A DNA stretch of 56,568 bases, counting the filler, from Platydemus manokwari (lineage: Eukaryota): the NCBI GenBank assembly GCA_037951405.1. It is 5 parts of 5 records of this genome, joined end to end, with 100 filler letters (N's around TTAATTAATTAA, not from the genome) between each part and the next. Parts side by side here need not be neighbours in the genome. Positions count along the whole stretch, not along the records: positions 21,922 to 35,415 come from JBBMOY011704733.1; 4 more parts are not named here. The stretch is one strand, 5' to 3'. This document shows positions 21,822 to 35,515 of this stretch, one piece after another (the stretch's first letter is position 1; each line of letters opens with the position of its first letter). The translations under genes and the position numbers were made by a program. The notes under the pieces were generated by a model that saw only the letters and a program-made list of their open reading frames with translations, was not told where the DNA came from and searched no databases.

Positions 21822-24800
21822 NNNNNNNNNNNNNNNNNNNNNNNNNNNNNNNNNNNNNNNNNNNNTTAATTAATTAANNNNNNNNNNNNNNNNNNNNNNN
21901 NNNNNNNNNNNNNNNNNNNNNATTCACCTCGCAATCAAATCTATATGAAGATAGAAATGATTGGCAACAATGATCCAAATAATTATTGTTTAATCCTATC
22001 AGTCTCAAAATTATTTTGTAAATATTAATGCCTCAAATATCAATTGACAACTCAACTCCTTTTTCTAAATAAATCTTTATTAATACAATGAACAAAATTA
22101 CAGTTTACACTGGAATAAAACATTGGATAACCGCTAAAACCTACAATTCCAGATGAGAGCGGTTAATACGTCCTTCTCTTGGAGTAAAACCGATTACCAA
22201 AGATATTTTTGAGCAAAGCTGTATAATAAAATGATAAACGATACGTACTATATATTCGGATCAGTTTTTTATACAAAAATCGAACTCACTGCTTGGAATG
22301 ACAATATGGAGTATGTTCTGTCGTCGAGCAAATTCTTCTAACAATCTTCGAGGGATTTGTCTAAATAGCTGCTTCTCAAACGCGCTATAGTCTAGTAGTT
22401 CCGTAAATTAATGGGCAAGTTCTGGTGTTCCGAACTTCTATTTATACTGCTTTTATTCATTATGCTTAAATGATTAAAATCGCTACATGATATTTTAATT
22501 CCCACGGATTTCCCGAATATTAATTTATTATTTCTTTTTACTACAGGATTTTTATTATTGAGAATATTATTAATTTCATTTGTCCCTAATTTTTAAGTTC
22601 TTTTCTAAAATATTATTTTTCCTAAACTTATTAATGTATTTTAAAGTCAATTCCATTTCATTGCCGTTTCAAATTATTTATTTTTATAAATTATCTATAT
22701 TTTAAAATATATAATAATTATTATTTCTAATTAATCTCTCTATCTGGAATTTATAAAAATTGATACATTTTGACGTCATGTCAAAAGTATCCAAAAATGA
22801 TTTATTACATTGACTTCACATTTAGCCAATGTTTCCTAAAATACATAGATACATTTCAGTGTATCGGAATTAACTATTGAGCCGAATCCATAATAATTGA
22901 TACAATTTTTTGGATACAATATTAATTAATCCAAAAATTATACAGCTATAATTAATACTGTTATACACTTATAAACACTTTTTCAGTTATTCTCAATACT
23001 TGTAACATTTATCAAAGAAAATAAAGCATAAAAATAAAAGTATTATTTGCACAGAACTGTTAATTGTTAAATTTTAATGCTCCTAGACCCAATTCCCAAC
23101 AATTATATTGAATCATAATACTGAAGCATATTTGGTATAGCAATCAATACTTCTATAAACCAAAACAACGATCAGTATGTTACAGAACGGAATCAACGAT
23201 ATCTAAATCTTATCACCCTCAATGTCTTTCACGATATAGACGTCTTCAGATTCTCAATTGCCTCAACAAACAGGATCATATTCTCAATCCCAGTCGTCAG
23301 TCTCCCATAAGATATTATCACAATCCCAAACTCAATTCTTCTACCGAAGTGTTCGAAAACCCCAATCCAAGTAGAAAGTAAACATTGATGATGACATTTT
23401 GTTATTAGACTAAGTGATTTTTGTGACCATCTTTACATGAAATGTATATAATTTATTTTTGAATATGTCAAAAATATTTGATGTATAATCATAATAGAAA
23501 TCTATAAGGGGCAAAATTATATTTTGAGAATAATAATAATGAATAAAATTATAATAAAATTTATAAATATGGATGAAATATAAATTATAAATAAATAAAT
23601 ATGGGTAAAATATAAGTTATAATCAATAAATTTAGGCGAAAAATAAATTAATTAAAATGTGGGCGAAATTAATTTATTGTTGGCGAAATCGAAATTTTAA
23701 AATGTGGGAGAAAAAGAAAATCAAAATTAATAATGTGAGTGAAAAATAAATTAAAATTATTGATTTAGGCGGATTTATAAAATAATTTTAAAATCACCAA
23801 TAGAAAAAAGAAAATAATGATCGAAAATAATGATTCATAATTCGTAATAGAACACAGTATATAAACAATGGAAAAATCAGAAAATTATCTCACACGAAAA
23901 AGATTTCAACGACCATATTACTGTGAGAAAAAACTTTGAAAAAAAGAAAGAAAAGAATAATAAGCACGATTTCGTATAACGATAATAATGAAAATCATTA
24001 AAATAGGTGTGTCGATAGTTTAAAAATCTATAATATTTAAAATCTACATTTTCAACACAAAGGAGGTCCGTTATCAGAGGCTTTCATAGTTGACCCTTTT
24101 TTAAATTGTGTGTTTGAGTAAATGTAATTTTGAGTGGTTAGAAAATAAAAATGTTTTATTAAATAAAGGAGATTTGAATCAAATTTCTATATCACAATTT
24201 TAATGATTTATAGTAAATTTGAATAAAAATTATTGATTTGATCTTTGTTATTGATTTATTTTAATTATAATATTTTGATTCACGCACCTATCGGATTGAC
24301 ATTGAGCTCCAACAGGCTCCAGTTTAGAACTCAAAGTAAGATTTGAACAATAATGCATAAATTCCAACAAGAGATCCCTAGGAAGTTATGATTTATAATG
24401 CCGAAGTCTGTTGGGGTAAAATCTGTAACATGAATGAGTCTCGCTCTATAATTATGAAATATAATGGATCGTTGTATACATTCGTTAATTATTTTACAGT
24501 AAAATGCCTTTCCTTACTATGGCTGAAGTTGTTTAATTTGGATGCTGTATACAGCTGGGTGATCTTCAAAAAACGATTTATAGTTCCAGTGGTTTCAAAG
24601 GTTTTAAACGGGGTATTTATGTCAATTAATATTCCCGGGTAATTCCTTATAGAAATTGTTAATTGTTTTATGTTTTTTAAACTTAATGCACATGCATTGT
24701 TTCGGGAATATGTAAATTTATTTGGATTTATTTGAATGGGTTAAACTGAAGATGTTTATGAGTAGTTAATAATAATAATAATTTTTATCTTTCATTATCC

Positions 24801-26107
24801 CTCAATTCTCAATGGGTTTCTTTATCTGAATAATGAGTTAATGGATTTTTTATATTTGCGTGATATTTTTCTATGAGAGTTCGTTTGACTATTTCGTCGG
24901 CTATATTCACAATTGTTAATTATTATCGAGCTCATAAATTATTTATTAGAAATTTGCATCAATATGAAAATTGATAATTATAATTATTAGAATTATTGAT
25001 CACCTTTTCCTGGAATAAATAATTGTAGACATAACACACTATATTTTTACGCAAAATTTCTATGCAAATGCATAATTTTATTTTAATTTTATACATTGAA
25101 TCACAACAAAATAAATGCCAAAATTTCAGGGTATGTCAAACGCCAACATACAAAATTAATTAATTGTTCCAACAATATATATATTATATCTAATATTTCA
25201 AATATGCAACCTTTAATACTTATTGCAATCAGGTAAGTTATTGATTTATTTTATGTAATCGACTCATTCTTTTCTGTGTTCTCACATCTTTGAAAACATT
25301 AGGTATTTCAAATTCCGTCTGAACTAAAACTTTCCTTAACAAATCTTCAATTAAATCCTACAAATATTTTTAATAATATCAAGATTCACCTTAGCTCTTA
25401 CTTTTGAAGTTTACATGTTCAATGAATTAATTGTAAGGTAATCATTAAGGAGGTTAGTTAGAAATAGCGATGTGATGCTATCAAATTTAGATTTAAATAA
25501 CTCATGAACATGAAATAAATTTGAAAAGTGTTTATGGAGTCAGATATATGACATTCTACTGCTTTAATAAGCTTTTTAAAAAATATCTTATAACACATTT
25601 CTCAACTTATCCACTCTCCCAGATCTAGCCATATTTATTAAAGTGATTTTAAAGATTTCTAAAAAGAAATTTAAATTTTAGTAATTTATTTAAATTAAAT
25701 TAAATAGATTACTATTAATCTATATTTAATGTTGAATGGATTTTCGATTATGATAATATTAACTGAATTTATTTTGAAAATTATCAGATATTTCTGCGTA
25801 AAATAATCTCATATTTGGAATATCATATCAGAGAAAGTGATTTCTGAATTACTAGTTATTAAAAATCATGTGAATTCTTAATTGATTATTTGATTATATA
25901 AATAATTATTAATTTAAATATTATTAAAACGGATCGAAGTGATCACACTTTAAATATCTTATTTCTTTCAGATAAAATTCAAAAATGATTTGCTATAAAT
26001 CACCAATAACATACAAAATATATTTTAAAGTATTTGTTTTAATAATAGTGATACCATGGAGATTTTAAGTGTTGTCATTTAAAATTTGTTCTTTAATTTA
26101 ATTACAC

Positions 26108-26641
26108 ATGTCTAAAGCACCGAATTTACCGCCTCTTCCATCAAATTTAACGGAAGAGTTGATAATAGAATACAGAGAAGCATTTAATTTACTTGTTACT
26201 CCTGAAAACCCAACCATATCAATTCAAGCAGTACCGTTATTAATACGTAAAATTGGATTAATGCCAAGTGAACAGGAGCTCAGTGTAATATTTTATCGGC
26301 CTTCATAATGACGTCATCTGCATTTGTAGCAAATTTTAGACGAAATCGATGTCGATGGAACTCTGGCCTATGAAGGGTTGAGCTTTGAACATTTCTGTCA
26401 GATTGCATCTCGCAAAGTGAAAGACGTTTACAGCGAAGATGACATCATTGAAGCGTTTCGGATTTTCGATGTGGACAACAATGGATTTCTACCGGTGAGC
26501 GAAATCAAGCGAGTGCTGCAAGGAATGGGCGAACAATTGACGGATGAAGAGATGAATGCCATGTTGGAGATTTCAAAACCAGATGATAACGGCAATGTGA
26601 GATATGAAGAATTTGTTCGAGACGTTGTGGCCAATGACTGA
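26108..26641 (+). CDS. Calmodulin-like EF-hand protein (~162 aa); exons 26108-26284 and 26330-26641
   Basis: LTEELIIEYREAFNL, IGLMPSEQEL, SEDDIIEAFRIFDVDNNGFLPVSE, MGEQLTDEEMNAML and NGNVRYEEFV align with calmodulin. A 45-nt phase-0 GT-AG intron joins the two ORFs. Confidence 0.92.
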
Positions 26642-26660
26642 TTTACATTGTATAATTGAC

Positions 26661-26944
26661 GAATATTAATAAATAATTTGATATTGATTGATTTTTTAAT
26701 TAATTATTAATTAATTAATTTAATTAAATAAAGAGTTTTAATAAATAATTTGATATCGATTGTTTTTTTAATTAATTATTAATTAATTATTTTAATTAAA
26801 TAAAGAATATTAATAAATAATTTGATATTGATTGATTTTTAATTAATTATTAATTAATTATTTTAATTAAATAAAGAATATTAATAAATAATTTGATATT
26901 GATTTATTTTTTAATTAATTATTAATTAATTAATTAAATTTAAT
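26661..26944. repeat. AT-rich minisatellite, ~72-bp unit x4
   Basis: Unit GAATATTAATAAATAATTTGATATTGATTG...TAATTAAATAAA starts at 26661, 26733, 26805 and 26876. Confidence 0.9.
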
Positions 26945-28409
26945 ATAGTACTGACTGATGTGGGGTTTGTTTTTGACTCCAATTATGACATAGCGCACAA
27001 TTGATATCAATGCAGCTTACACCAATTCATAGCAATGATAAATGTGGTTGAATTCGATTGATGTCATCTCACTTCAAATCTAGCTCGTGCGATTTGTGCT
27101 TCATCGATATTGGATTTGAAAATTATTATTGAATGGATTCGATTTATCCCGTTTAATCTCGGTTAAAAAATCTCATTTTGACAAATGTGGCTAAGATTGA
27201 TTGGATGGATTGAAGAAGGCATCGGTGGATTATGAAAAATTCCATTTAAAATCGGGTAGATAAGCATTGCAATGATTTACAGTTCCAGATTGGCTAAGAG
27301 AAACTGGTGAAAAAGCCACTTTTGTGGGCACGTGACTCTAAGATTTATAAAATGCCTGTATTCATCAATATCATCTTTTTCCCTCCTAAGATAATTAGAT
27401 ATTAACTAAGTCTGACTGTTTAAAGATTTGATAAAAAATAGGATTAAGATACAGGTGCACATGTCCTCACACGACTTGGCCAGAGAAATGCCTATATAAC
27501 CAACTTCGTCGTTGGTTGAATGTACTTTATTTGGGGAATGGATTTTCGAACTTTACATTAGAGAAAAACATATTGTTATCCACAATAAATATTGAATTCT
27601 GTAAAAATATACAACAGCGACACAAATTCCTAAAAGTAGTCAGAACGATTATTACAAAGAAAGATTACATCGCCTATAATATAAAACACACATGATTTAC
27701 ACACAAAATTGGAGGTTCCTGCCTATAGTCTATTCAATATATAGTCTTTTTGTAGGTTCTGATTGGTGTATTATTCAGTGATTTCCCTATGGTATAACTG
27801 TCTTTTGATTGTTTATCTTTTGTTCTTTTACGATCATATTTTGTTGGCATGCTTTAATGTCAAATAACCACCGAATCAGTGGTCATTGATTTGAAAGTCG
27901 CGTTTGCCTGCTAACACCACTAATTATTATGTATATGCTTATACCATTTTAACAGATTATTTAAGGTTTCTTTGAGAGTCTTTATCCAAAGTTTAACTCT
28001 CATCATAATAAATTTAAGAAGTTTTTTATTGTTTTTAATTAGTTCTAGATTATTTTACTATTTCACATTTTATTGGATTAGATCGTTTCCTCACAATTTT
28101 TTTGTTAAACCAGTGTGTCTTACCAATTAATGAGGTTACTAGATTTTGTTTTCTGGAGATTCATTAAGTGTGACCACAGTCCTGAAATTACAATATAGTG
28201 ATCTTATTGTCATTATTTTTACATTATCGATGATGTTGAAACAAAATCTATCTAGTTATATTCTCTTTATTAAGCTTTTATTTGAGTTTTGATCAAATGA
28301 TTAATTCAAACTCAAGCTCTGTGCAACGTTGGATAACAATTTTTATAACAATTTTAATTTTATGCATGACGATACGTGTGACATGTGGATTAAAATATCC
28401 ATCAAACAA

Positions 28410-28926
28410 AGACCTTACTGAACCAATGAAAAGAATGCAACACTTATCCTCATTAAACTAATAAAACAGTCAACCTCACAAATTGTGTCGTCACGGCGTC
28501 CGATTGTTCTCTAGGACATACCATACCGAATTTTTTGTAACTATCCTTAACCTATAAATCTTTAACTGGATAGAAGCTAGCAGCCTTTTCTCTCTGAATC
28601 AAAAGGCAATGTTTGCCTCTAACGGATGTGCTGAAAACAACGTCTACTTGTTTACCCTATTCGAATACACAACTTAACAGCACCGAGACTTGTACCTCTT
28701 CTAGATCGATTTGAAAGAAGCATTCTCAAGCATACCACAGGACCTCATCTGGCTTACTCTGGAGAAAATAGTATAAAACTCTCACTACGTTAAAATATTA
28801 AAAACCTTATACCAGAACTCCAAATCTAGCTAATCCTGTGGCCAGTTAAAGACACCATCAAATCCCATTCACTGTGGTGTCAAACACAGATGCCCACTAT
28901 CTATGTTCTTATTCTGTCTGTCAATT
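28410..28926 (+). mobile_element. Decayed non-LTR retrotransposon reverse transcriptase fragment (R2/NeSL-like)
   Basis: Translates with stops and one frameshift as RPIVL*D..YRIF, LFSLNQKAMFASNGCAENN, IDLKEAFSSIPQDLIW, LKTLYQNS and PIHCGVKHRCPLSMFLFCLSI (cf. RT motifs DxxxAFxS and GVKQGCPLS). Confidence 0.85.
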
Positions 28927-29462
28927 CCAAATATCTGTTTTGAAGAATTTATTCCTGTAAAAGTATATTTCCTATTTTTCTGTTTTAAATTATGAAAAGG
29001 TTTTCTTCTTTTGAAACCTTTATTATAAGTATTTTCGTTTTCTTTAGTTTTATCTGGCATCCATCCAAATAGTTTTCCTATTCTGCATTGTGATTCATCT
29101 ATTAAAGTAAAATTAACATACTTGATATTTTGATAAATTTTCAATCTTTCATTTTCATGAGTTCCCCATGTTAATCTCATGGAATTAAATAAATTTGGAA
29201 AAAAGTTATTTCCTGAAGTAATATTATAATTTACCTAAACATCCGCTTCATTGTTTTCTTTTGTCTTTTTAAATTCAAATTTTATTGAATATCGAAGGAA
29301 ACTATTACAAATATCTAAAGGATTTGAAGTTGGCTGGAATTCAAAAACAATATCAGTAGATTTATTTAAATTTGTTGGCAGTATCTTATAGATTAATAGC
29401 ATGAAAATCTTTTTTAATTCAATGTACAAATTTATAAATTTTTTATCTAGGTTTGTCACCAT
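28927..29462 (-). pseudogene. Putative major capsid protein (double jelly-roll), N-terminal part
   Basis: Reading through a stop at 29235-29237 gives DIVFEFQPTSNPLDICNSFL...ITSGNNFFPNLFNSMRLT...GWMPD...NKGFKRR. This resembles Polinton MCP N-termini (NNFxxSLF, NxGFxxR) and lies downstream of the ATPase on the same strand. Confidence 0.6.
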
Positions 29463-29799
29463 TTTTATTATAAAAAAATAGGAATAAAAATATTTCGTTC
29501 TCTTAAAATTTTTTTTGAGCATGCACTTTGTTATAATTGAAAATATTTTTTGTTTATCTTATTTTTTCTTTATTTATAAATCGTAATAGATGTATTTAGA
29601 TTTATTCACCTCCTCAAATGCTAATTGATGTTCTTCTTAATTTTCTGATCTAACAAAGGTTTAGCAAATTCAGTGATACCTTGATTTAACAAAATTTTAG
29701 AATATTGTTTTTATTCAGAAATTATTTTTCAAGGAAACAATCTTTTTTAATTCTTCTATTCTTTTATTTATGTCGAAAGTTCCCATTTTAATTTTTAAA

Positions 29800-30564
29800 T
29801 TTAAGTCTACTTCGTCTTTATAAATTGTAAACAGATCTACAAGAATTAAACCTTATCTTTATCGAATGCTATATTTTTTTTTATTTCTCCTTCCATTGTT
29901 TATTTACTAAAAAAAATAAAATCTTCTTTTTCTGTAGTGTTGAAAAATAAATCCGAATGTATTAAACCTTTATCTCCTTTATTTAATTTAAATAAAAAAA
30001 TAAAATTTGAATTATTTCTTATTGAATTCTTTGGTAAATCACACCAACTTTGGGATAGGTAAATATTATTACAATTATTATGTCTTCCTATTGTAAAATA
30101 AGCAGATATTATTTCCTGTGAAACAATCATAAAAAATTATTAAATCCTTTTTATTTTTATTTAAGCCTGATGGTTTTATAATTTCATCGGATTTGGGAGT
30201 CATAGTTATAGAAAAACTTCATTCGATGTATTATAATTTTCTGTAGGAGGTAAATAAAGCTCACCAATTTCTCTAATAGTTAAATCTTGGTCAAAATTAT
30301 GTTGATTATCAAATATTTTATTATATATTCTTTTTATAAACCATTTTGAAATCAGTGATATAAAACTTGATATTCTTCTTGATAAACAGTTTTTGAAAAT
30401 ATTACTAAATTATCATAATCTAAAAATCCGAGTGTTAATAACATTTTAAAAAGTAATTGACTTTTACCACAACCAGGACTTCCAAAAATTAACATTCTAA
30501 AAGATGAAAGAATATTTAGATGATTATTAAAAGTTATTTTATTTCTTCTCCAAACAAAAGTCAT
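29800..30564 (-). pseudogene. A32/FtsK-like genome packaging ATPase (Polinton/adintovirus type)
   Basis: Walker A RMLIFGSPGCGKS, degenerate Walker B LIIFYDC (~30125-30145) and the family motif FTIGRHNNCNNIYLSQSWCDLPKNSIRNNSN. Interrupted by stops and frameshifts. Confidence 0.9.
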
Positions 30565-30649
30565 TTTTAAATTTAAAAATTAAATAAGATTAATAAATGT
30601 GAAACCCTATTTAACAACTTGAAACTTATTAAAATACCGGTCTAGCTTG

Positions 30650-31250
30650 AAACTCACGGATAAAGATTCTGATAATTTTTGAGGTTCTGAAATATGACCT
30701 CATTCTACTTTACCTTGAAATTCTTTAATAAAATCTTCAGATAAAATTTGAAATTCTGAAATAGCCCCCCGTTTCACTTTATCTTGGAATACTTTAATAA
30801 AAGATTCTGATAATTTTTGGGGATTGAAATATGTCCTCATTCCACTTTATCTTGAAATTCTTTAATAAAATCTTCAGATAATTTTTGATAAAATGAAATA
30901 GCTTCTCAATCCACCTTATCCTGGAATTCTCTAATAAAATCTTACGATAATTTTCGATAATATGATATAGATTTCCAACTCACTTTATCATGAAATTCTC
31001 TAATAATTGATACTTAAAGTTTTTGATTTATGCAATCTAATATAAGGATTTTTTCATGTAAATTTTGTATACAATAAGGACATTCATCACCATCATATTT
31101 TTTATCACATTCTTCACGTATATGATGTTTACAAAAAATAAGCATGAATGTTTTCCTATAATATACTATACATTCTTCAGAATTTTCTGATTTTTTATGT
31201 AATCGTTTTCCATTTCTCTCAGTAAATTATTTTAAATTATTTGTCTTCAT
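30650..31250 (-). pseudogene. RING-finger + 23-aa tryptophan-repeat protein
   Basis: EECIVY...CKHHIREEC...ECPYC (decayed RING), followed by about five 69-bp repeats of WxxISxxQKLSEDFIKEFQDKVx, the Trp-repeat type seen in large DNA viruses. Several stops and frameshifts. Confidence 0.75.
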
Positions 31251-31281
31251 TTATTTTAAAAGTTAATTTTTTATTTAAAAA

Positions 31282-32261
31282 ATGACTGAATTCGCTGGGG
31301 GATATTTATGTCAGATTTGTAATAAAGAAATTTCTAAATCTAATAAATCAAAACATGAAAAAACCAAATCTCATATGAAAAATACGAGTATGAATGGTAC
31401 GAATGGCAGGAGTAAGAATAGCATGAGTATGAATAGTACGAGCATGAATGGTACGAGCACGAATACAAATAAGAAATTAAGAGGTTTTGAATTTATTGGA
31501 GGAGACTCAATGAAACTGATGACCGGTGGTGATATACAAGAAGCAATTACAAATAATAATTTTTTAAATAAATATAGTACTGGATATCATTAGGGAGAAT
31601 TTCATTTAAAAAGTATGAATCCATTTAATAAAACTGATCCTGTTCATATTTGTACGTGTCAAAATGAGCTCGAGTGTTGATTCAAAGTCAATTCTAGTGT
31701 TGTCTAAATTTTCTGTCAACAATGCAATACCTTCAAATTGCGGGGAACTCCTAAAGTTTTCATCTACTACTTCAATTGAGAAATCTTTTGAATGATCTCA
31801 GGTAATGACTGATCTCTAGTGAAAACGTTATAGAATACATGGACAATCCGCAGCAAGTTTCCTAAGTTCGTTATGATAGGAATATTGAAACTGTTCAGAG
31901 ACTAAATGTTAGTGGAGATAAAAATTTAATCACCTCTAATGATTACTTAAGATAGAGTTCAAATTACAATTTGCAAGGCACAAATCTTCAAGAACATTTA
32001 CAAAATTATGATGAAACTGGAAAATTAGATAAATCTCCAATTCCAAAAGAAAATCATCAACTTGTAAAAAGAATAGATATGATAGCATTGCAAGATGATC
32101 TTGATTTTATTTCAAATGATTTACAAGATAGACATGTTGCTAATGTTGAAATGATACATCAAATGGATAATATTCCAAATTCAACATTCAGAGAAAAATT
32201 ACAACGATTTTTAATTAAAAGTATTATGAAGGGGAAAATTATTCTTGGACAGGGCTGTTGA
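31282..32261 (+). pseudogene. C2H2 zinc finger + viral-type phospholipase A2-like gene; exons 31282-31659 and 31974-32261
   Basis: CQICNKEISKSNKSKHEKTKSH zinc finger, then GGDIQ...H*GEFHL...HICTC|QGTNL...RIDMIALQDDLDF...DRHVANVEM...GKIILGQG. This matches the parvovirus/adintovirus PLA2 pattern GExHL..HNFTGPGT..D..A..HD..Y..R..AD. Internal TAG at 31591; catalytic HD reads DD. Confidence 0.75.
31660..31973 (+). ncRNA. Group I self-splicing intron, IC1-like, partly decayed, no homing endonuclease ORF
   Basis: P AAATTGCGGGGAA (31735-31747), Q AATCCGCAGC (31845-31854), R GTTCAGAGACTAAA (31893-31906) and S AAGATAGAGTTC (31949-31960) occur in the correct order. P4 is TGCGG/CCGCA and P6a is AGTTTC/GAAACT. 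The 5' exon ends in T, the intron ends in G, and removal restores the reading frame. Confidence 0.9.
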
Positions 32262-33160
32262 GATAATACCCATGCAGACTGCAAACCAATAAATTACATA
32301 ATAATAGATAATACATAAAAGTAATAATAATAAATAAAACAGAAAACCCACATTAATTAAAATTCAGGCGTGTAGGCGGAATTATATTAATAATAGTTAT
32401 ACAATTTTTTCAATAAATTATTAATCCATGTTGCCATGGCAATCCGAAATATAGTCATAGAAATTCAAATTTAAATGCAAATTGCCATGACAACGGTGGA
32501 TATTACTAAGGAAATCCTCAAATAAGGAATAAAATTATTCATTCGCCAAAATCAAAATCCTTATAAATACTGAAGTAAAATTCAGTATTTTGCCACAAAA
32601 TTACGCAGTTCATAGCAATTACAGATACTTCGAGACTAAATTCGAGATTGCAAATCCAAATTCAAGATTACAAATCCGATTACAAATCAAATACGAAGCG
32701 ACATTCGCAGCCGAGTCAACTCGTATACCCTACTAAATTCAGTCATTTCTAGCCTCCGGCAACAGTTGTTTACCTATTATTCAGCTCAATTATTAATTCA
32801 AAATGGTAAAAGCTGATTATTATTTTGATCACCTGATGTCATTCTCCGAAAGGAGATTTGTTGTCAGTGAACTTTAAACCCTCACAAAATCGTAACAGAG
32901 TTTGTGAGTCTAAAATCACTATTTCCTTAGTTTATATACCGCAGTGGGGCGCCATTTAGTTGTTATTTACTGATAAATCTTCCGGGCACAACAGCTTACT
33001 CCTTCTAACTTACAGCATAACACATTTGGTAATATTTATTATAATAAAGTATTTGTTATTACATTATTGTTGTTCTTATTAATATTTATATAACTCATTC
33101 ACACGCAATCTATTAATCTGTGAAGCTTCAGATATTGGTGGAAACATCAATCTCGAACTA
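32256..33160 (+). repeat. Possible solo-LTR-like repeat abutting the viral element
   Basis: Begins TGTTGAGAT, like the other LTR-like repeats in the window, with a TATAAATA at ~32563 and a higher-complexity noncoding body. The right boundary is uncertain. Confidence 0.35.
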
Positions 33161-35515
33161 ACTGAAGATCATATAATTACATAATAAATTAACATTTGAA
33201 AAATCGCTGATTCACTATTAACTTATCACCAAACAAGTTTCCATCAGTACGACAAATAATTTATGAAATTATTATATTTTAATAATGTATTTTGTATGTA
33301 TAGAAAGCAGATTAAAGGAATCAATATTGAGAAATAATTATCGACACTGAGAAATCATTAATCAATAAAAAGAAAATATAAGTAAATAAGAGAAGGAAGT
33401 TAAATAAATTGTAAATATCAGACATAATGTGACAGCACGCAAAAGCGTACTGTGGGCTAACACATAGTATTAATAACTCTAAGGTGTTCAATTGAAATAA
33501 TATTAGTTGTACCAACCCTTAGGCATTCATTCACAATTTAATCTTGTTCAGACCCAGAGCAGCATCAATTCCTCTGTGCGAAAGACTTTTTATAAAATCA
33601 ACTAATTTTTCCATTAATTCGGTCTCATGCCAGTTACTGAAGCCCCTGCAAATCGAAACTTTCAACCTTAATAACCATAAAATACTTTTAATAGCTCTTT
33701 GAAATTTTGCTATGCTCCTTTTAAACCAAATGATACAATATTGAATTTATAAGAAACATCAGCATCTGCCAACGCGGTTTTACATTACCAATACCATTCA
33801 GTCGAGAATATTTCAGAGTTTTCTATTTTATCAGAAATAGCTTGTAAAGACATAATGGATATGTATCTTTTCTAGTAAACGCATTTAGTATTTAATAATT
33901 AATACATCTAATACTACCGACAATATTTTTATATGTACTACTAGCAGTCCTCACGTCAAATAATTGAATCGTTAATATCGTTTTAAAGAATTTACAGTTT
34001 TTGCCTTGTTTTCTTCTAAGCATACTCAAGCTATACAACATAACCCATATCTAAGAACACTACTTTACCTGGTATCATATACTAAGTAGGTGCTTCTAAC
34101 ATCAAATTTTCGATTGGCTATTAATTCAATAAATTATTTTAGTGTTCGTTTTTGGTTATCATTTATAATATGGCTATTAACATTAATGCGTTTTTTATTA
34201 ACAGTAGTCTAATAAACATAAGATACAATCGATAATTCTCGGGTTAAGCGCAACTACTTTATTTACAAAATCGAACAAAACTAACATTAATCGATCGAGA
34301 ATTTTTTAATTTTTAATAATCACCAATTTATAACAAATTGGTATTTCGAATTCTCGAATAATAAGCATACCTTGTCAGTACGAGGAACCTTCATAATATG
34401 CCACTTCCAATCACATGTCATAATAAACGCTCTGTACAAATATTCTCAATCGAATTAATTCACTAACATTAAGAAGTTTCAGCAAAGTGTTCTTAAAATA
34501 TGCTTAAAATCAACTAATCTAAAACTTTAAATAAAATGTTTAATTTTTCGACGTAATACTTCAATTATAAACGAAATGTTAGAAAAAGTAACAAAAATAT
34601 ATTTTCTAACCATGCGTATAAAGGTTAAATCTTTTTGAAATATCAATAAAATCAAAATCGAATGGCAGAATAATGCTTCATGATATAATTATTCTCAATA
34701 TCACAAGCAATATTTGCAAGTAATTTCCCATGAATTACTCCAGTTTTAAACCCAGATCCTTTGAATAACGATTAGACTAAAATTCGAACATGTATAAAAT
34801 TACCACAAAATCCACATCCAATTATAATCTTCTTGAATACAGGGTGTCTATCGATTATTGGTTGATCATCAGGAGTTCTCTAAAATATATTAATTATACT
34901 ACTCAATAAAATGATTAATATTTTCTTTTTAATATTTTTTATTATTTGCAATACCTTGTCCTTATTATTTGATATAAGTTGTGGTAATAAATCAAGCTAC
35001 AAATTTTAAAATCAATAATTATAATTAATTACTAAAATCATTATGTAACTGCACTCACATTTTTTTTATGCCTGGAGGATTTGAATATCTAAGCGAAGGC
35101 ACAAAAAGCCCACGTGTCAACTCTTACTATTTCACTTACTCGAAGTTCAACCCAAAAAGTATTCAAATAAATATTCAAACAAAATATGTTTAACAATATT
35201 TTATTAAAAATAAGCTGTTTAGAAAAAGTTTAAAACCTTCACACCTTCATTTCTATAAAATCTTTGATCTTCTTCACATTTCTTGATATTGAATTCTGTG
35301 TTTTTCCATATTTTTATATCAAATTCAATCAATCTACCTATATTACCTACATAGATCTTCTCTATATATCTTTGACAGTTTTCTTTCACTGATTCTTTAA
35401 TAATCAAATCGGTATNNNNNNNNNNNNNNNNNNNNNNNNNNNNNNNNNNNNNNNNNNNNTTAATTAATTAANNNNNNNNNNNNNNNNNNNNNNNNNNNNN
35501 NNNNNNNNNNNNNNN

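Follow-up and report, generated by a model that had tools for sequence, protein, structure and literature searches.

Mobile group I introns that carry homing endonucleases of the HNH or endonuclease VII type occur in phages and giant viruses, and to our knowledge animal nuclear DNA is considered to be free of group I introns. The only ones generally recognized in animals are the mitochondrial introns of sponges, cnidarians, and placozoans (PMC5360047). Endogenous polinton-like viruses of Paulinella micropora, Desmodesmus armatus, and Rhodomonas lacustris are reported to contain members of the Rfam family RF00028 (Intron_gpI) (PMC12220804, 2025). The virion modules of adintoviruses, for their part, contain PLA2X, a PLA2-like gene of the PF08398 type, described in a source that makes no mention of a group I intron (PMC8502044). 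The present work deals with a 56,568-nt stretch of DNA from the Platydemus manokwari assembly GCA_037951405.1 (hereafter the window, which joins parts of five records), and specifically with a 314-nt segment at positions 31660-31973. We consider it very likely that this segment is a group I intron of canonical type whose endonuclease gene has been lost, and that it lies within the PLA2X-like virion gene of a Polinton/adintovirus-like virus, a fragment of which (28872-32261) integrated beside an animal-type nuclear gene. The intron is a known RNA family in a new setting, with no new mechanism, and the window copy is a fossil.

Several features recall the mobile introns of phages and giant viruses: in a metagenomic relative of the window intron (contig L046) an endonuclease open reading frame (ORF) occupies a peripheral loop and has homologues beside introns, the insertion interrupts a strongly conserved coding motif, and the site is polymorphic for the presence of the intron. 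In contrast to those introns, the window copy carries no ORF, and the L046 ORF is recognized by PHROGs but not by Pfam or NCBIfam. As in the protist polinton-like viruses, an RF00028 intron resides in a protein gene of what is probably a small integrated double-jelly-roll DNA virus, and its 314 nt compare with 309-376 bp there (PMC12220804). However, the gene interrupted in Rhodomonas is a short ORF, unannotated and lying upstream of the capsid gene, rather than a PLA2X-like gene, and whereas those hosts are protists, the window intron has an animal-type gene as its neighbour and a relative, L046, with an HNH-type endonuclease ORF (PMC12220804). The arrangement of PLA2X near a packaging ATPase gene and a putative double-jelly-roll capsid gene is that of adintoviruses and Mavericks (PMC8502044), from which the window remnant differs in lacking PolB, integrase, and protease genes. 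Animal mitochondrial introns share with this lineage the frequent decay of their homing endonuclease genes, but they are organellar, lie in cox1 or nad5, and encode LAGLIDADG enzymes (PMC5360047), whereas the window intron is found in nuclear-type DNA, within a viral remnant, and belongs to an HNH-type lineage. Our literature search turned up no paper that describes a group I intron in animal nuclear DNA, in PLA2X, or in an adintovirus or Maverick, and a scan of two mollusc Polinton-like loci for such introns found none.

The locus illustrates one route by which a group I ribozyme can reach an animal-type nuclear genome, namely as cargo of an endogenised Polinton/adintovirus-like virus. With this locus, introns so far reported from polinton-like viruses of protists gain a second host setting and a defined insertion point in a named gene, at the calcium-loop codons of PLA2X, and an endonuclease-bearing relative and empty sites add evidence of mobility.

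Identification of the intron and its splice sites

The stretch searched was record JBBMOY011704733.1, at window positions 21922-35415, which has a G+C content of approximately 27%, contains zero Ns, and holds only short ORFs. When it was scanned against all Rfam families, the sole notable match was RF00028, at 31683-31975 on the + strand, spanning the full model (1-253) with 59.0 bits and an E-value of 4.2e-13; the gathering score of this family is 50 bits. The original prediction, which had placed a group I intron at 31660-31973 and had proposed this covariance-model search as a check, is borne out by the score and by two homologous introns at the same site. The intron and the gene that it interrupts are delimited as follows.

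31660-31973, + strand: group I intron without an endonuclease ORF, 314 nt, 33% G+C, assigned from the RF00028 match, the reading frame, the U at position -1, the terminal G, and homology with contigs L046 and L043
31282-32261, + strand: PLA2X-like gene, broken, with a zf-U1-like N-terminus and a parvovirus-type PLA2-like domain
31282-31659, + strand: exon 1 of this gene
31974-32261, + strand: exon 2 of this gene

The reading frames upstream and downstream of the intron differ, and its length equals 3x104+2. Joining the exons unaltered, with exon 1 taken from 3' of an in-frame stop onward, yields an open product of 117 residues, whose alignments with P0003 (55% identity, 125 bits) and P0011 (52%, 106 bits) run across the junction. 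Both relatives are products of uninterrupted ORFs and are colinear and gapless across the point at which exon 1 meets exon 2, in agreement with the proposal that removal of 314 nt fuses two frames into one PLA2-like protein. Among 25 boundary variants tried, the frame was kept only by removals of 311, 314, or 317 nt, and of these frame-keeping variants only 31660-31973 combined a U at -1 with a terminal G. The predicted exon end in U and final G are indeed present, as T at 31659 and G at 31973. The first base of the intron is C and its last two are TG, so that the ends are not GT..AG.

The family of the interrupted gene was determined from exon 2. For its stop-free portion (31974-32258), a search of 1.84 billion cluster representatives gave 70 relatives, of which 11 reached E <= 1e-10, and phmmer detected relatives with E-values down to 5e-26. 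PF08398, the parvovirus-type PLA2-like family, was matched by 33 of 36 aligned relatives (best E-value 2.5e-16), which, together with the alignment of uninterrupted relatives across the junction, places the intron inside a PLA2-like gene as had been claimed. Among the same 36 relatives, four carry an integrase core (rve) and eight a zinc-ribbon DUF5679 domain. The N-terminus of the window gene resembles exon 1 of L046 (zf-U1, E 0.002). A search for the calcium loop and the catalytic dyad revealed that several positions of the family-conserved PLA2 motifs are changed in the window gene, which is also broken by the in-frame stop in exon 1 and by a 7-codon shortening relative to its nearest relatives.

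An alternative genetic code, suggested by the in-frame stop in exon 1 and by long ORFs under the ciliate code, was rejected, because long table-6 ORFs fill all overlapping frames (an artefact of AT-richness), relatives differ in length by 3 nt at the exon 1 stop, and the neighbouring EF-hand gene reads under the standard code.

Ribozyme architecture, covariation, and decay

The secondary structure of the intron was derived by combining the predictions of several tools, and its elements, all on the + strand, are listed below.

31728-31973: catalytic core, from the cmscan alignment, RNAalifold on three copies, and pair counts
31655-31659 with 31668-31672: P1, exon bases with the internal guide, U.G wobble 31659/31668, from RNAfold
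31676-31692: P2 hairpin
31698-31721: P2.1 hairpin
31728-31735 with 31907-31915: P3
31735-31745: P element, including the P4 5' strand (31739-31744)
31749-31843: P5 with its P5a-c extension
31845-31854: Q element, including the P4 3' strand (31847-31852)
31853-31894: P6 and P6a
31893-31906: R element
31949-31960: S element
31896-31908 with 31949-31960: P7
31914-31936: P8
31960-31973: P9

The four core elements P, Q, R, and S were thus located in order at 31735, 31845, 31893, and 31949, where the original prediction had placed them; of the complementarity that it described in P4 and P6a, both P4 strands were found, and P6a was recovered by RNAalifold over the three copies. In P1, a guide that starts 8-9 nt into the intron pairs with the last five exon bases. 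The P1 strands are CGUGU/GCUCG in the window, CAGGU/GCUUG in L043, and CAGGU/GCCUG in L046, and the U.G wobble is common to all three, while a G-C pair of the window is A-U in L043. Four of the five pairs are canonical in the window, counting U.G, and the P1 of L046 is fully paired.

RNAalifold on the three cores recovered P4, P5, P5a-c, P6, and P6a, with 7 pairs maintained through double changes, and compensatory changes were observed in P1, P2, P5, P6, and P6a. The pseudoknotted helices P3 and P7 were checked, and their pairs counted, by script. Among the 44 alifold pairs, five are non-canonical in the window, two in L046, and none in L043. The window also shows two mispairs out of six in P3, where L046 has none, and one in P1; overall, its extra mispairs fall in P1, P3, P5a, P5b, and P6. 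P7 with its bulged A is present in the window, and one of its pairs is a wobble there and Watson-Crick in both relatives. The lower bit score of the window copy (59 vs 101 for L046) fits its mispair count. Since all genes of the element are broken and the ribozyme has more mispairs than its relatives, we regard the window copy as a fossil; judging from these pairings, efficient splicing has probably been lost, even supposing that the copy is transcribed.

By analogy with established group I chemistry, splicing of an intact version of this intron would begin with pairing of the last five exon bases to the internal guide, which places a U.G wobble where cleavage occurs. The 5' splice site would then be attacked by a free guanosine docked in P7, after which the terminal G would occupy that guanosine site and the exons would be ligated. 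In the ligated product the codons for the calcium-loop motif, a conserved part of the PLA2 domain, would be whole again.

Homologous introns and empty sites in metagenomes

Two further introns were found at the same codon boundary of the same gene. The 751-nt contig L043 (ENA sample ERZ27257134) matches RF00028 with 51.4 bits directly 5' of an exon-2-like ORF, and its intron is 78% identical to that of the window, shares the codon boundary, and has the long P5 extension in common. Near 400-432 this contig has no G at the place aligned with the terminal G of the other two introns, and the frame of exon 2 shifts near its end. L043 seems to be a second, independently decayed intron-bearing copy. 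A DNA pattern specific to the long P5 extension was then used as a query; it had a single match in JGI metagenomes, on contig L046, and no match in IMG/VR.

L046 (1,755 nt, 27% G+C) matches RF00028 with 101.4 bits. Its intron spans 260-1471 (1,212 nt) and ends in G; exon 1 ends ...Y-T-G, and exon 2 begins P-G-T and is open to the contig end with an H-D...Y motif. The proposed splice site of the window therefore coincides with that of an apparently intact copy.

Intron-less copies of the site are present in L040, L041, and L050, with flanks at 72-82% DNA identity. L040 and L041 match both flanks at approximately 76% identity without the 314-nt block, and L050 (4,162 nt), which derives from the same sample as L043, has the ATPase gene and PLA2X in the same arrangement; examination of L050 and L051 for an intron found none. 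Hence intron-plus and intron-minus copies of one element family co-occur in one metagenome sample. The first 50 nt of another contig, L042, had been taken by eye for the 3' end of an intron, which Rfam did not support, and an IMG/VR locus search with exon 2 and with the ATPase piece yielded no confirmed relative.

An endonuclease-bearing relative and the probable past mobility of the intron

In L046, P2.1 is a 23-bp stem (arms 296-319 and 1153-1176) that encloses two colinear endonuclease ORFs in one frame. Both match colinear parts of phrog_1035 (endonuclease VII; E-values 2e-5 and 2e-3), and the first also matches phrog_2255 (HNH endonuclease); searches of these ORFs against Pfam and NCBIfam produced no match. 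Using tblastn, homologues of the L046 ORFs (42-54% identity, E-values down to 1e-25) were detected next to group I introns on intron-rich contigs of IMG/VR, one of which belongs to a giant-virus metagenome-assembled genome (MAG). The window and L043 keep just a short P2.1 hairpin, and no endonuclease ORF was found in the 314-nt intron of the window.

The intron cores are approximately 82% identical in all three pairs (window 31722-31961; L046 1172-1415), whereas exon 2 identity is 73% between the window and L043 and 62.5% (DNA) or 33% (protein) between the window and L046. Equidistant introns in diverged exons hint at horizontal movement of the intron or at stronger constraint on the ribozyme, two causes that are not separable here. 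The intact exons, strong ribozyme, and endonuclease ORF of L046, together with the plus and minus copies in one sample, support the view that, before integration, the intron was already part of the virus lineage, and the sequences suggest that the intron lineage was once a homing one. The proposal that a virus lineage carries this intron and deposited one copy here is therefore supported, with the qualification that the window copy is a decayed fossil and not a working intron of an animal gene.

As a separate observation, several IMG/VR contigs (L037, L003, L009, L015, L012, L016, L010, and L002) are extremely dense in RF00028 matches, L037 holding approximately 17 in 12.7 kb, with homologues of the L046 endonuclease interspersed among the introns. 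Giant-virus MAGs make up part of this set, and others in it may be organellar rRNA regions filed in the wrong place.

The probable viral remnant

The PLA2X-like gene forms one end of a recognizable element, composed of the following parts.

28872-32261, no strand assigned: recognizable remnant, truncated at both ends, taken as the union of its parts
28872-29462, - strand: truncated and broken gene piece, putatively the N-terminal portion of a double-jelly-roll major capsid gene
29903-30564, - strand: packaging ATPase (A32/FtsK type) remnant, broken
30662-31226, - strand: block between the starts of the ATPase and PLA2X genes, consisting of 69-nt repeats (30662-31025, family D2) and a small RING-like ORF (31017-31226)

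The ATPase remnant contains a P-loop piece with weak matches to Pox_A32 and FtsK_SpoIIIE. It is colinear with an ATPase-like ORF of the mollusc locus L047 (43% over 53 aa, E 3e-11; 41% over 27 aa, E 2e-4), is 82% identical to L050 at the DNA level, and is interrupted by at least one frameshift and several stops. The capsid piece matches the N-terminus of another L047 ORF (48% over 29 aa, E 2e-5), which itself matches PF21738 (DJR-like_dom, 3.6e-13); the window piece has no Pfam match of its own, contains one in-frame stop, and lacks most of the gene. L047 also shows a weak match to DNA_pol_B_2, of the protein-primed type. PLA2 relatives P0014 and P0017 are encoded within Polinton-like loci of this mollusc assembly, GCA_000327385.1. 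The assembly, which published studies treat as a mollusc genome, is probably that of Lottia gigantea. The assignment of the interrupted gene to a Polinton/adintovirus-like element, as originally suggested, accordingly finds support in the adjoining ATPase and capsid pieces, which match PLA2-bearing mollusc Polinton-like loci, and in the description of PLA2X as an adintovirus gene.

No convincing long inverted repeat brackets the remnant, and no coding-like sequence was found in 32300-35415. The RING-like ORF gave weak RING matches (E 0.01), and the 69-nt repeats encode a recurring peptide motif. The whole block at 30662-31226 is absent from L040 and L050, where the two gene starts sit close together, and it may be a lineage-specific gene or an insertion.

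The neighbouring gene and the host setting

A gene with a standard spliceosomal organization lies 2.2 kb from the remnant, with no N gap in between and a uniform G+C content of approximately 27% over both.

26110-26641, + strand: EF-hand gene with two exons, 26110-26284 and 26330-26641 (EF-hand_7, E 1e-14)

Its intron is 45 nt long and has GT..AG ends. Its best relatives are P0001, of metagenomic origin (88% identity), and P0002 of Trichobilharzia szidati (61%), and the single intron of this schistosome gene occupies the same position as that of the window gene. A further protein search with P0001 returned no additional named relative. These comparisons support a setting in animal, probably spiralian, nuclear DNA; the earlier suggestion of an apparently animal nuclear genome is upheld by the intron position shared with a flatworm gene, although the setting is the least secure of the five parts of the original interpretation.

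Directly after the EF-hand stop codon, about 4.5 tandem copies of a very AT-rich 72-nt unit (family D1) occupy 26621-26948. Between the EF-hand gene and the capsid piece lies a block richer in G+C (26950-28870, 30-33%) that has no Pfam match and may be an insertion that truncated the element. An identification of this block by eye as a decayed reverse transcriptase was dropped, as Pfam lent it no support.

Evaluation of alternative explanations

The intron could in principle be a chance covariance-model match in AT-rich DNA, the 314 nt being an ordinary insertion or a spliceosomal intron. The score exceeds the threshold by just 9 bits and several helices contain mismatches, as such an explanation would have it, but the E-value of 4e-13, the homologous copy at 101 bits, the compensatory changes in five helices, the C...TG ends where a spliceosomal intron would have GT..AG, and the intron-type endonuclease in a homologous intron leave this explanation effectively refuted, with a negligible chance of being correct. 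A second alternative concerns the origin of the DNA, which might be that of a protist, symbiont, prey organism, or contaminant, or a chimeric join of host and viral sequence, rather than animal germline. Metagenomes are the only source of the closest relatives of the EF-hand gene (P0001) and of the element (L040-L051), group I introns of polinton-like viruses have so far been reported from protists, and the nearest relatives of the intron and its endonuclease in IMG/VR include giant-virus MAGs. Nonetheless, the two-exon EF-hand gene with its schistosome intron position and 61% identity, the longer PLA2-family relatives in Polinton-like loci of a mollusc assembly, and the uniform G+C content of gene and element, with no N gap between them, speak for animal DNA, as does the decay of all element genes, which would be expected of old integrated DNA. 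A non-animal or chimeric origin is unlikely in our estimation, though it retains some weight.

It is also conceivable that the element integrated without the intron, which homed in later or spread among endogenous copies inside the host nucleus. The coexistence of intron-plus and intron-minus copies of one family in a single sample would suit this scenario, and introns that remain equidistant while their exons diverge show the pattern of horizontal movement between diverged genes. The window intron, however, has no endonuclease ORF; its divergence from L043 is similar in intron and exons, as co-inheritance predicts; and stronger constraint on the ribozyme core could also give higher intron identity, while movement between co-infecting viruses explains the pattern without activity in the host germline. 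We judge such late arrival to be distinctly improbable, and favour the integration of a viral fragment that already contained its intron.

Several points weigh against the reading of the locus as a fossil group I intron in an endogenised Polinton/adintovirus-like element of an animal. Where the introns of the window and L046 have their terminal G, the aligned position in L043 holds no G, and the two L046 endonuclease ORFs are split by a single stop, so that no copy is shown to be fully intact. Splicing, for any copy, is predicted from sequence. Exon 2 of the window taken by itself has no Pfam PLA2 match, and the Polinton/adintovirus-like label rests on three genes, two of them weakly matched; PolB, integrase, protease, and terminal repeats were looked for in the searched record and were not found. 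L046, L043, L040, and L050 are short metagenome contigs, and the nearest named relative of the EF-hand gene is just 61% identical.

Implications and additional observations

A farther-reaching scenario, which we offer tentatively and consider rather doubtful, is that a Polinton/adintovirus-like lineage infecting animals had an active homing group I intron (which intact relatives such as L046 may still carry) that removed itself from transcripts in the nuclei of animal cells. No earlier case in animal nuclear gene expression would then be known, and intron exchange would connect the lineage with the giant-virus intron pool. Should less decayed copies be expressed, their transcripts could reveal whether a group I intron can function in animal nuclear RNA.

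Gene finders split genes of this kind into two ORFs, as seen for P0006 and the L046 ORFs, and covariance-model scans should therefore accompany the annotation of endogenous viral elements.

Finally, a long, near-perfect AT-rich hairpin was noticed just upstream of the intact PLA2 gene of an ENA contig (L044, positions 33-277). Several plant miRNA models matched it below threshold (77 bits, where the gathering score is 230), and it could be a terminal or regulatory inverted repeat.
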